NCBI GenBank assembly: GCA_025594325.1
Contig: JANHCV010000007.1
Coordinates: 1,612,001-1,676,000, forward strand
Direction: 5' to 3'
DNA: 64,000 nucleotides
Source: Blastocladiella emersonii ATCC 22665
Taxonomy: Eukaryota > Fungi > Blastocladiomycota
In this document: one piece after another, positions 52,177 through 57,102 of the stretch
Layout of the letters: the number at the start of each line of letters is the position of its first letter
Numbering within the stretch: the first letter of the stretch is position 1
Made by a program: the position numbers and the translations under genes
Notes under the pieces: model-generated
What the model was told of the DNA's origin: nothing
The model's input: the letters and a program-made list of their open reading frames with translations, nothing else
Database searches by the model: none

Positions 52177-55150
52177 ATGATGCGCCAGACGAACATCCCT
52201 CGGCCGCCGTCGCACGCGGCCACCGCGACCGCATCCGCCACTGAGGCCTCGTCCGCGTCCTCGGAGAGCTGGGAGCTGCGTCGGCCGCTCGCTCCAGCGT
52301 CGCCGATCGGCCATGCCTCCATCACAATCGACGCGAGCCACGCGCCCGCGATGCCGCCGCCTACGTCGTCGGACACGCCGACGTCGCCCACGCTTACGGC
52401 TGACGGGAACATGGGTGCGGGCGGCGCGGGCGGTGCCAATGCACCGAGTCAGGGTAACGGCAACGGCCATGACCATGGCCCGCGCATCACGCTCGCGTTC
52501 GAGAACTTCTTCTACACGGTGCCGGTGACCAACACGCGCGGGGTCCCCGCCAACGGGAACGGGAACGGCGGCAACGGCCACGGTGCGACGAGCGGCGCTG
52601 CCCTTCCCCCGCCACCCACCGAGAAGCCGTCCCTGCGCCAACGGATCCACGCGCGCAAGGAGACGTCGACCAAGACGGTCCTGCACGGCCTGAGCGGCGA
52701 GTTCCAGCCGGGTCGCCTCACCGCGGTACGCCGACGCTCCCTTTCACCCCGAATCGTGCTCTAACAGCTTCGAGCGTGCAGGTACTAGGCCCTAGCGGGA
52801 GCGGCAAGACGACCTTGCTCAATTCTCTCGCCGGCCTCCCGAGTACGGGCTCGACGCGTGGCGCGATCAAGCTCAACGGCGTCGCCCTCGAACCGCACCA
52901 GCTGCGCTCGGTCATCGGGTTCGTGTTCCAGGACGACGTGATTCTCGAGACCATGACCGTGTCCGAGGGTACGTGCGGCGGTCGAGCCCCTTCTCGCGTG
53001 TGCTGACTCGTGGTCACGTTGTGTAGCCATCGACATGTCGCTCCGCCTGCGCAACCCGCCCATGTCGGACGAGGAGCGGCAGACGCGACTGGAGCGCGCC
53101 ATCGACCTGCTCGGTCTCGCCGACGCGCGCAATACGCTCATCGGGTCGCCGCTGCGCAAGGGCGTGAGTGGCGGCGAGCGCAAGCGGGTGGCCATCGGCA
53201 TGGAGCTCGTTGCGCGGCCCCAGGTCGTGCTTCTCGATGGTACGCTTCGACTCGGGCCTCGGCCATGTCGACACGCTAACCGCCTTGCCGACGATTAGAG
53301 TGCACGACGGGCCTCGACGCGTTCACGGCCTACTCGGTCATGGCGCTCCTCAAGGGGCTCGCGCAGACCCAGGGCAAGACCATCGTGTGCACACTGCACC
53401 AGCCCTCGTCTGAGATCTTTGATATCATCGACGACATCCTGATCCTGGTCAAGGGCGAGGTACTCTTCACAGCGGCCATCGACCACGAACACGCGGCGAA
53501 CTGACATGCTGGCCATTGCCGCGTAGATCCTGTACCACGGTCCGGCCAAGGATATGGTCGACTACTTCTCGGCGCGCGGCTTCGACTGCCCGCGGTTTAC
53601 CAACCCGCCCGACTTCGTGTTCATGCAGGTCATCAACAACAACCCGGCCGGCACGCAGGTTCTCGTCGAGGAGTTCAAGCGCACCAAGGCCATCGCCGCC
53701 GGCAACGGCGACGACGAGCAGTTCCTCCCGACCATTGAGCCCGTCTCGCCCGTCTCGCCCGTGGCCCACCACCGCCGCCGGCGTCACCGCACCTTCAGCT
53801 CGGGCAAGTACAACCACCGCCGCCACCAGGAGGACGAGGCGACGCGCCGCGCGCTCGCCGAGATGACCAAGTACCGGCCGTCGTTCGGCCAGCAGTTCCG
53901 GTACCTGTCGTCGCGGTCGTGGTACAACGCGATCCGCAACCCTCTGATGCTGCAGGCGCACCTTGGCCAGGTCGTGTTCCTAGGCGTGCTGGTCGGGCTC
54001 ATCTACCTCGACATCCTGGGCGGCGATGAGCCCGGGTCGTCGATCGCGCAGTCGGTGTCGGGCGCGCTCTTCTTTGTGTGCACCAACTCGTTCTTCTCGG
54101 CGGTCATGCCGGTGCTGTCGGTCTTCGCGTCCGAGCGGCCCGTGTTCATTCGCGAGTACTCGACGGGCTACTACGGGCCCGCCGCGTACTACTGGTCCCG
54201 CACCCTCGTCGAGCTGCCGTTCCAGATCCTCTTCCCGCTAGTCTTCGCGTGCATCACGTACTGGATGATCCTGTTCTCCGGGTCCTTCGTCGAGTTCCTC
54301 GTCTACACCATGTTCATCGTGCTGCTGGCCCTCGTCGGATCGGCCTTCGGCATGTGCATGGCCAGTACCTTCGAAGATATCGGCATCTCGCTCGCGGTTG
54401 CGCCGGGTACGTTTCCTCACGCGTGTCCGACATCGGGGTGACTTGGGTCACCTCCCGACCACGTTCCCCCGCCTCCCCGACCACCTCCCTTGACCTCCCT
54501 GACCTCCCCGACTTCGCTAACACCCCAAAAATCGTAGCGGCGATCTTGCCATGGATGTTGTATGGCGGGCTGCTGGTGAACACGGCGACATCGGCAGTGT
54601 GGTTGGTGTGGATCCAGTGGATCTCGCCGATCCAGTACGCGTTCACGGGCCTCATGCTCAACTTCTGGGCCGGGCGCGACGTGAACGGCTTCGACGGCGA
54701 TGCGTACCTCGAGCAGCTCCAGTAAGTTCTTCTCGTGTACTTTCTTGACATTCCGAGCGTGGTTGCTGACCGAAAAACGCGTCCAGGGTGACCAAGCGCT
54801 TCTCAATCGGTGTCAACGTCGTCTTCATGGCCATCCTGTACGCGTTTTACACCATCCTCGGCTATTTCGCGCTTCGCCGCATCGCGTACGCCATCGGCGG
54901 GCGCGCGACGCCGAGCGACCGGTCGATCACGGCGCTGATCGCGCGGGCCAAGTACCGCGTGCACCGCGGCCACGACCCGATCATCGACATGGCCGGGCAC
55001 GAGGACGACGTCGACGGTGCTGCCGCAGCTACCACGAGCGCGGCGAGTCGCGGCCAAGCTGGGGACGGAATGGTCCCGCCCGACGTCGTCCAGGCCGGCG
55101 TCCTGCAGCCCGCGATGCAGGGGTGGACCGCATCGACGGGCGCTGAGTGA
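52177..55150 (+). CDS. ABCG (White-type) half transporter, 845 aa
   Basis: Seven exons; introns 52726..52781, 52969..53026, 53240..53298, 53460..53526, 54407..54537 and 54722..54786 keep frame. Walker A GPSGSGKTT, FVFQDD, signature VSGGERKRV, LLDECTTGLD, CTLHQP, then ERPVFIRE and ABC2 transmembrane helices. Confidence 0.93.
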
Positions 55151-55201
55151 GGGGGGTTGGAGGAGGGAAAGAGTGTATTCTCAGAGGTCCAATTGATTCA
55201 T

Positions 55202-56388
55202 TGTATTGTCGTTTCCCTTCGCCGTGTTTCTCGGCCCTCGGGAGCCCATACTTGAGTCGTCAGGCGCGGGTGGGGGCGTGTTCGTATCTCAGCGATGCTC
55301 CTGCACCATGGTGAGCGACAGGAACTGTTCCGGGTCGGCTGGTGTGTGGGCGCGCTAGCGCGTCTCCCGTCTCGCGTCCCGCGCGGGATGCGATGCGACG
55401 CTCATGCACTATCGCGTGCGGCTACTCTGAGAAGGATAGCGCGACCTTTGTTTTGCAAATGACGCGTCTGCTCGACGCGTACTTGACAAGATGGTTCAAC
55501 ATGGGCCTCCGTTCTTCCAGTGGAGCTCAAGTCCAGGAGCGCGCTCGCGGCGGGGGACTCGCTCGAGCGCGCCCTTTGACTGATCCGGCGGGCCGCGGGT
55601 TCGTCGCGTGCTTCAATTCGATTGCAAACGGCAACGGGGAACGCTACCACGCTCGAGATGATCATGCGCAAACCGTCCTCCTCGTTACGGCCATGGAGCC
55701 GCAAGATGTTGTATGGTCCATCAACGTGGTTCCATCACACCCGCGCTCTACCGCATCACGCTCTTCACAAAACTCGGGCAGTTTGACGTCACAAACTTTT
55801 TGCTCGAGCAAGCGGTTGTCATGATCACGGATCTGGACGCCCTTCACGGCGCGCCGCCGCGGCTGCGACCTCAACTCGGACCCGCGGCCCTTCCTCGCAC
55901 GTCTTTACGGCGTACGACACGACTCGCAACTCTCCCTGGCCGTGGAAGTTGAGATTGCGCCCGCGCCCGTCAATATACCAGCTTTATATACCGTGTTTTA
56001 CGGGCGTACCAAGTCGCGCCTGCTCGAGCGAGTCCCCCGCCGCGAGCGCGCTCCTGGACTTGAGCTCCACTGGAAGAACGGAGGCCCATGTTGAACCATC
56101 TTGTCAAGTACGCGTCGAGCAGACGCGTCATTTGCAAAACAAAGGTCGCGCTATCCTTCTCAGAGTAGCCGCACGCGATAGTGCATGAGCGTCGCATCGC
56201 ATCCCGCGCGGGACGCGAGACGGGAGACGCGCTAGCGCGCCCACACACCAGCCGACCCGGAACAGTTCCTGTCGCTCACCATGGTGCAGGAGCATCGCTG
56301 AGATACGAACACGCCCCCACCCGCGCCTGACGACTCAAGTATGGGCTCCCGAGGGCCGAGAGACACGGCGAAGGAAAACGGCGATACA
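55202..56388. repeat. Long inverted repeat: arms 55202..55568 and 56022..56388 (367 bp; inner 340 bp perfect), 453-bp spacer
   Basis: Base-by-base reverse-complement match from 55229..55568 to 56022..56361; the outer 27 bp carry four C/T differences. Confidence 0.97.
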
Positions 56389-56407
56389 TGTGCGCGTACG
56401 TTTTGGG

Positions 56408-57102
56408 TCATGGTTGTGGTGCGATGCTCGAGGTCTCGGTCCCGATAGTCGTGGCGACCGAGCTGGTCGCGTCGCCTTCGGCGAGTGAGGACGCCGAGGG
56501 ACCGACGTTTTGGAACGCGAGCGAGTACAGCAGTGGTCTAGCGGAGGTGATTCGGGTCAGTGCCTGAGCGCAAGGGATCGAGCGAGTGGAGGGTACTGAC
56601 ATGGACTCGGATGAGGTCTCCTGCGTCGTGACGTGAAGCTCCTTCTCGACCGACTGGCGCGTCATGCGAGGGCGAGCGGTCGAGGGTGATTCTACAGCGA
56701 GACATGACATGTCAGCCCAGCATGGTTGCTCAAGCGCCCGAGATCCACGCACCTCGATCGAGCACCGACTTGGTGAAGAGGTACCCGTTGTACTCGCAGT
56801 ACTCTGCAATGAGCCAGTTGATGAGCTCGTTCTCACCGCTCTCCTGCGGTGTGATGCTTGGCTACCCACGAGTGACGACGGAGCGCGTAAGCACTGCGCC
56901 TCTGAAGCAATCGAAGCGAGAGCAACAGACAGGTGATGTGATAGACTCAATCACGCTCTTCCTCATGTCTGCTTTGAGCCGCTGCAGAACGCCGCGCCGC
57001 TCGAGCGACTCGGCGATGGCTGGACGACGGCGGCACGAGCGTCAGCCCTCGAAACGACCCTCACCCGGCTGACATCAACCTGCCCTTTTCAAGTTCATCC
57101 AT
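56408..57102 (-). CDS. FOR20/CEP20 (FOPNL)-like centriolar LisH protein, about 150-166 aa
   Basis: join(57102..57084, 57019..56931, 56861..56753, 56691..56408). AIAESLERRGVLQRLKADMRKSV, LisH-like ENELINWLIAEYCEYNGYLFTKSVLDRE, and C-terminal ELH...PLLYSL. The gene is not visible in the ORF track. Confidence 0.78.

Follow-up and report, generated by a model that had tools for sequence, protein, structure and literature searches.

The DNA between two convergent genes of Blastocladiella emersonii ATCC 22665 contains two long, nearly identical sequences in inverted orientation, and the question raised by this locus is whether such a palindrome represents a mobile element, a regulatory module shared by the two genes, an artefact of assembly, or the trace left by a past event of DNA repair. 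The window referred to in this work is the whole stretch of DNA that was analysed (64 kb, C19:1612001-1676000, within a genome of 32.65 Mb in 21 contigs), and all positions given without a contig or locus name are positions in this window. The results described below indicate that the locus is quite probably a small, non-genic local inverted duplication, viz. a spacer palindrome, lying between the two convergent genes, and that it most likely belongs to the familiar scars left by DNA repair.

Structure of the inverted repeat and its flanking genes

The main features of the locus are as follows.

55148-55150, plus strand: stop codon of an ABCG-type transporter gene, whose upstream exon (53554-54441) matches ABC2_membrane (E=6e-30)
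55202-55568, no strand: left arm, probably the derived inverted copy of the right arm, beginning 51 nt past the ABCG stop
55202-55228, no strand: frayed outer edge of the left arm, with four C/T differences from its partner (56362-56388)
55561-55568, no strand: GCTCGAGC, a self-complementary octamer closing the left arm on its inner side, a candidate microhomology for fold-back priming or template switching
55569-56021, no strand: spacer (fold-back loop) of 453 nt, with single-copy intergenic DNA of lower GC in its left 257 nt
55826-56068, plus strand: decayed remnant of a LINE-like pol ORF, from the region just after RNase H, spanning the junction of the spacer and the right arm
55982-55990, minus strand: TATATAAAG, inside the decayed LINE remnant, where the family members are GC-rich
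56022-56388, no strand: right arm, probably the source copy, adjoining without a break both the spacer and the native 3' flank of the FOR20-like gene
56408-56410, minus strand: stop codon of a FOR20/FOP-like gene, 19 nt beyond the right arm
56736-56861, minus strand: LisH-bearing exon piece of the FOR20/FOP-like gene (LisH_2, E=6.6e-5; FOP_dimer, E=0.022, under the curated cut-off)

The two inverted arms (55202-55568 and 56022-56388) were identified by a repeat search; they are 367 nt each, 99% complementary and 453 nt apart, and they form the sole inverted repeat of at least 60 nt in the 64-kb window whose arms lie within 5 kb of each other. Base-by-base comparison of the arms revealed four mismatches (at 55207, 55209, 55215 and 55228), all of them C/T differences. 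As all four fall within 27 nt of the outer ends, the remaining 340 nt on the inner side (55229-55568 and 56022-56361) are perfect, with 0 mismatches. If four mismatches were placed at random, then the chance that all of them would land in the outer 27 of the 367 positions is (27/367)^4 = 2.9e-5. The structure claimed in the preliminary description of this DNA, viz. perfect arms of 340 bp, a spacer of 453 bp and an outer 27 bp with only C/T changes, is thus borne out by this comparison, and the arrangement of near-identical inverted arms around a spacer (367 nt, four mismatches, 453 nt) is that of a local inverted duplication. The edges of the arms are sharp. Past the outer arm ends there is no further homology, nor is one half of the spacer related to the other in inverted orientation; a larger, decayed palindrome was ruled out, as no leftover homology was found outside the outer ends or inside the spacer.

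The identities of the two flanking genes come from single exon pieces, and their exons are unjoined. The ABCG gene ends in a stretch where two frames overlap, with stops 4 nt from each other (TGA at 55144-55146 and TGA at 55148-55150), and the frame ending at 55150 has a higher GC3 and a more protein-like tail than the frame ending at 55146. On the other side, the last exon of the FOR20-like gene, which shows raised GC3, extends on the minus strand from about 56710 to 56411 and is followed by the stop codon at 56408-56410. This gene is clearly split, with its LisH exon (56736-56861) in a different frame from the last exon, and therefore the 180-aa ORF listed at this locus (56408-56950, minus strand), which is without overall GC3 periodicity, is not the protein. 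The distances reported earlier are also correct: the ABCG stop (55150) lies 51 nt before the left arm and the FOR20-like stop 19 nt after the right arm.

Palindromic chimeras can arise in PacBio libraries, and a chimeric palindromic read or a mis-join could in principle have produced a structure of this kind. However, the structure described here is interstitial, it is bounded by two different unique genes, and it has its own spacer and four arm-specific differences. Further, the arms are far shorter than HiFi reads, and adapter-containing reads were filtered and Illumina polishing was carried out for the published assembly of ATCC 22665 (21 contigs, 34.27 Mb), a product of the La Jolla Assembler and PacBio HiFi reads (PMC9730499). 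An artefact of the assembly or the library is thus very improbable, and single reads should easily contain a structure which measures 1.2 kb and has four arm-specific differences and unique flanks. When metagenome contigs were scanned for exact matches to the novel junction, none was found. The words 'palindrom' and 'inverted' are absent from the text of the genome paper (PMC9730499).

Retroelement-derived sequence in the spacer and the direction of copying

In a whole-genome search with the entire 1187-nt unit, the stretch 55826-56068 matched at least 27 other loci, with 68-76% DNA identity. Of this stretch, 196 nt belong to the right part of the spacer and 47 nt to the beginning of the right arm, and one colinear alignment covers both. 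A part of it (55840-56004, frame +2) is 38% identical (E=1.8e-7) to residues 1311-1365 of a 1682-aa ORF that bears a reverse transcriptase (L047:2249-7297), and the retroelement family to which it belongs has the C-terminal end of an RNase H domain (PF00075, E=2.7e-5, a little short of the curated cut-off) immediately upstream of the part that matches. Based on the RNase H neighbour and the similarity to the reverse transcriptase-bearing ORF, the stretch can be assigned to the interior of a LINE-like pol gene, of which it is a decayed piece in plus orientation. The related ORF (G000:C6:1218248-1223296) can be regarded as a distant parent type of the remnant in the spacer. It is intact over its 1682 aa, with a reverse-transcriptase domain (RVT_1) at residues 448-719, an RNase H-like stretch near residue 1242-1292 and about 390 residues beyond RNase H; RVT_1 is its only Pfam match, and no match to an endonuclease, an integrase or a tyrosine recombinase was seen in it.

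These results modify some of what was stated previously concerning the spacer. The spacer was described as unique, which is correct for its left 257 nt, which are single-copy, but not for its right 196 nt, which are retroelement-derived and have relatives at 27 or more loci. Likewise, no transposase is present, as had been stated, yet a remnant of a LINE-like pol ORF is found in the spacer, and this has to be added to the earlier account. The TATATAAAG that had been noted on the minus strand at 55982-55990 is present.

The remnant also provides information regarding the direction in which the arms were copied. The homology with the retroelement family is unbroken across the boundary of the spacer and the right arm (56021/56022), whereas the inner 44-51 nt of the left arm match the same family in reverse and the homology there ends abruptly at 55568/55569. 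The right arm is thus continuous with its neighbourhood and the left arm is bounded by two novel junctions, and this difference indicates that the junction of the right arm is ancestral and that the left arm is derived. The reading of the right arm as the source and of the left arm as its inverted copy appears solid, being taken directly from alignments in one genome.

Inner breakpoint and proposed origin of the duplication

Each arm ends on its inner side exactly with GCTCGAGC, an octamer that reads the same on both strands. For a breakpoint to coincide exactly with this octamer by chance, the probability is about 3e-4 per position. The inner boundary on GCTCGAGC is what would be expected if a short inverted microhomology had served for fold-back priming or template switching, which we infer to be the most likely origin of the duplication. 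In human fold-back duplications, short inverted sequences at the boundary of the spacer and the duplication are a signature of the process (PMC3907307), and in yeast one end of the local fold-back insertions is set by microhomology, whereas their other end is made by end-joining (PMC11724301). No microhomology is seen at the outer junction (55201/55202) of the present locus.

The sequence of events that would lead to the observed structure can be outlined as follows. A break or a stalled fork would have occurred at what is now the left end of the spacer, and the 3' end would have folded back, or switched template, pairing through GCTCGAGC with the copy of this octamer 453 nt away. About 360 nt would then have been synthesised outward, through the 3' flank of the FOR20-like gene, after which end-joining at 55201/55202 would have connected the new end with the other side of the break. 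The product of a replicative template switch would not differ from that of the route by a break and fold-back. However, there are three observations that weigh against the fold-back route. First, GCTCGAGC is over-represented about 4-fold in the 64-kb window, where it has 22 sites compared with 5.7 expected from shuffles, none of which reached 22, and a third copy of it is present in the spacer itself (55802-55809). Second, the microhomology is hidden, since it has been absorbed into the arms. Third, the known templated fold-back insertions in yeast are mostly 5-34 bp, which is far below 367 nt (PMC11724301). Examples of the sites of GCTCGAGC in the window are those at 216, 11671, 38482, 55802 and 56999, and short palindromes such as this one are ready-made microhomologies for fold-back events.

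The frayed outer edge of the arms

The differences between the arms are distributed very unevenly, with 0 of 340 positions mismatched in the core versus 4 of 27 at the outer edge, and a core of higher identity than its edge is the pattern that arm-to-arm gene conversion produces. The direction of the mismatches is mixed, the left arm having T at three of the sites and C at one. Two explanations of this pattern have to be weighed. If the duplication is old, then its core would have been re-homogenised by arm-to-arm gene conversion, with the conversion tract homogenising the core and the extreme edge, which is hard to include in a heteroduplex, escaping from it. The same logic of conversion that spares the extreme edge applies to the palindromes of mammalian sex chromosomes. 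On the other hand, if the duplication is young, then the last 27 nt would be its error-prone part, as the end of the copied tract, beside the end-joined junction, would have been synthesised or processed with errors. Error-prone synthesis of the end accounts for the difference between the core and the edge equally well as conversion does. Edge escape by itself predicts fraying at either edge, but it is found at the outer edge only; with four sites, however, the corresponding probability is 0.125, which is not significant. An old, converted duplication and a young one are thus nearly equally probable, the former perhaps by a slight degree the likelier. The suggestion made earlier of an inverted duplication that is either recent or maintained by gene conversion is in agreement with the single-copy nature of the arms, with the polarity given by the retroelement remnant and with the identical core and frayed edge.

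Evidence against a mobile element, a gene or an RNA in the arms

When the sequence of the arm was searched against the whole 32.65-Mb genome, only the two arms were returned, even at E<=10, and the arms are therefore not a dispersed repeat; their sequence is locally confined and absent elsewhere in the genome. This result bears directly on another explanation of the locus, viz. the insertion between the two genes of a foldback/MITE-like DNA transposon of the non-autonomous kind, or of a DIRS-like retroelement that has inverted terminal repeats and an internal deletion. The long terminal inverted repeats and the short non-coding core with retroelement-derived sequence are features which such an element would show, and the genome does contain hairpin-ended mobile units that bear the same LINE RNase H tail. 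However, the locus is single-copy in 32.65 Mb, and no target-site duplication of any length is present at the ends of the arms, where the flanks (...GATTCAT / TGTGCGC...) show no direct repeat beyond 1 nt. The arms are also without tandem subrepeats, except for a 25-nt run of a 7-mer in each arm, and they are unlike the ends of the Helitron2-like unit described below. Further, when four loci with copies of the retroelement family were searched, no inverted repeats, terminal or otherwise, were found in them. The DIRS-like variant is in addition at odds with the facts that only a 243-nt scrap of pol is present at the locus and that the related 1682-aa ORF matches RVT_1 only. Based on these observations the locus is not a mobile element, and we consider the insertion of one to be highly improbable. 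The foldback/MITE-like option that was raised in the preliminary description is thus not upheld, given the absence of other copies, of a target-site duplication and of subrepeats. The accompanying statement that there is no clear target-site duplication was correct for the arm ends.

Several other candidate explanations were considered and rejected. The GC content of the arms at the three codon positions is 0.60-0.66 in all frames, with GC3 of 0.87-0.93 in the neighbouring exons; coding arms were ruled out based on this flat codon-position GC, and the two ORFs that run from an arm into the spacer have no Pfam match. An RNA gene in the arms or the spacer was ruled out, as neither an Rfam match at E<=1 nor a tRNA was detected. 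RIP-like mutation was ruled out due to normal dinucleotide indices and to the lack of a common context for the four changes. LINE twin-priming was ruled out because the arms are mainly non-LINE DNA and are duplicated, not merely inverted, and a retro-copy of the FOR20 3'UTR because the end of the copy is without poly(A). Lastly, membership of the locus in an abundant 1.77-kb family was ruled out, as the match with it is limited to 243 internal nt and the Helitron2-like ends of that family are unrelated to the arms.

The shared 3' flank and its possible role

As the left arm places a sense copy of the FOR20 3' flank after the ABCG gene, the mRNAs of both genes would enter the same sequence. The earlier claim to this effect is right geometrically, with the sense copies located 51 and 19 nt past the respective stops. 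The common flank begins with TGTAT, which is followed by a T/GT-rich tract, and in this regard it resembles the flanks past other likely gene ends in the window. TGTA shows an enrichment of about 2.3-fold in such flanks, although this value comes from a noisy set of ORFs and is suggestive only. If read-through of the locus occurs, then the RNA of 55151-56407 is predicted to fold into a 367-bp stem with an MFE of -1028 kcal/mol, in which, for the plus-strand RNA, three of the four arm differences become G-U pairs and one a C-A mismatch.

These features lead to the proposal of a functional module, in which the inverted repeat would serve as a shared 3'UTR or terminator, or in which read-through would give a 367-bp dsRNA that is loaded into Argonaute, in either case co-regulating the ABCG and FOR20-like genes. 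In its favour, both 3'UTRs almost certainly enter the arms and do so in the same sense sequence (the arms being 51 and 19 nt past the stops), the predicted read-through stem is uninterrupted (MFE -1028 kcal/mol), the outer end of the arm is T/GT-rich like other gene-end flanks (with the TGTA enrichment of about 2.3-fold in the noisy set), and the genome contains four loci with a Piwi domain (Argonaute), all with long open frames. However, the six-frame, exon-by-exon search of the genome found no Dicer_dimer and no RdRP, and only one weak match to RNase III (31 bits, C1:2959876-2960049). As the search was made exon by exon and its control genomes were prokaryotes, the blanks for Dicer and RdRP are weak evidence. 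A survey of fungal Dicers also indicates that Dicer-less species exist within Blastocladiomycota (PMC12663654), which likewise goes against the proposal. Taken together, the results suggest that Argonautes may be present in this genome without a canonical Dicer. In addition, the arm is made of whatever adjoined the FOR20-like gene, the dead LINE scrap included, and it thus looks accidental, not designed. For these reasons a functional module of the kind described is unlikely. A stronger form of this idea is that the palindrome is active as a shared 3'-end module, coupling the two genes either by a hairpin that enters a Dicer-poor Argonaute pathway or as a two-way terminator, and that 3'-flank palindromes are recurrent and selected in Blastocladiella emersonii; this we consider to be very unlikely. 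The presence of an identical sense sequence in the 3' flank of both genes is a passive consequence of the duplication, and a regulatory role for it is only putative.

The Argonaute loci are located at C17:1404132-1405055, C17:1586553-1587476, C11:2504843 and C20:476549 (G000). The two on C17 have the same scores and the same open-frame lengths and may represent a recent duplicate pair.

Comparison with known inverted duplications and hairpin loci

The locus is an inverted duplication of a known kind and does not involve a new principle. It is closest in its arrangement to the fold-back duplications of the human germline (PMC3907307) and to the inverted insertions induced by double-strand breaks in yeast (PMC10622511, PMC11724301), in which, as here, an inverted copy lies beside its source with a single-copy spacer between them. 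The likeness may extend to the junctions: a short self-complementary sequence is present exactly at the boundary of the spacer and the duplication, and the other junction is without homology, as in capture by end-joining. However, the 367 nt duplicated here are intermediate in size between the local yeast insertions (5-34 bp) and the human duplications (kilobases to megabases). The present duplication is also fixed, interstitial and two-ended, without a terminal deletion or a dicentric, and its mechanism is read from the sequence alone. The palindromes of mammalian sex chromosomes (PMC8327919), which are >99.9% identical due to arm-to-arm conversion, similarly consist of inverted arms and a unique spacer, and here also the core is near-perfect with the divergence confined to an edge. 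However, those palindromes range from 10 kb to 1.5 Mb, in contrast to the gene-free arms of 367 nt in the present case, for which conversion is only a candidate process. With foldback elements and MITEs the locus shares long inverted termini and a short non-coding middle, but it differs from them in being single-copy, in having neither a target-site duplication nor subrepeats, and in the continuity of the inner arm end with the spacer.

Long hairpins of another kind are formed by endogenous hpRNA loci of animals and inverted-repeat siRNA loci of plants, and dsRNA arises by read-through at convergent genes in fission yeast. The locus resembles these in having a long, perfect inverted repeat at a place where convergent read-through could give dsRNA; it differs in that a canonical Dicer and RdRP were not detected in this genome, and what is known of it comes from DNA.

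The locus provides a small, clean and natural example of an inverted duplication of the fold-back type, which is useful as an illustration, as the probable direction of copying can be read from a scrap of a retroelement and the inner breakpoint lies on a self-complementary octamer. Small non-genic inverted duplications of this kind are the best material for the reading of breakpoints.

An abundant 1.77-kb unit elsewhere in the genome

A unit of about 1.77 kb, which was noted above in connection with the LINE RNase H tail, is found at L016:690-2461 (G000:C15, about 724253-726024) and at 20 or more other loci (L013-L030), in copies that are 93-97% identical and have fixed ends. Its 5' end is ATCGAGGGCTAAAGCCCTC, which has an inverted partner, GGGCTTTAGCCCTCGA, near the 3' end; the latter is followed by a small hairpin, AGACGCGAAGCGTCT, and by the terminus, AAGTATAAT. 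These ends look Helitron2-like. The cargo of the unit consists of the C-terminal part of RNase H together with the tail of a LINE pol, and the unit also contains a 15-bp tandem array (2280-2393 in L016). In some cases (L026, L028, L030 and L010/L027) copies of the unit follow one another head to tail or are nested, at distances of a few kb, and such nested or tandem copies are located at G000:C20:648-651 kb and 686-688 kb and at C3:58-60 kb. In one instance the last 78 nt of one copy directly adjoin the start of the next, which suggests that these units have inserted into or beside existing copies of themselves.
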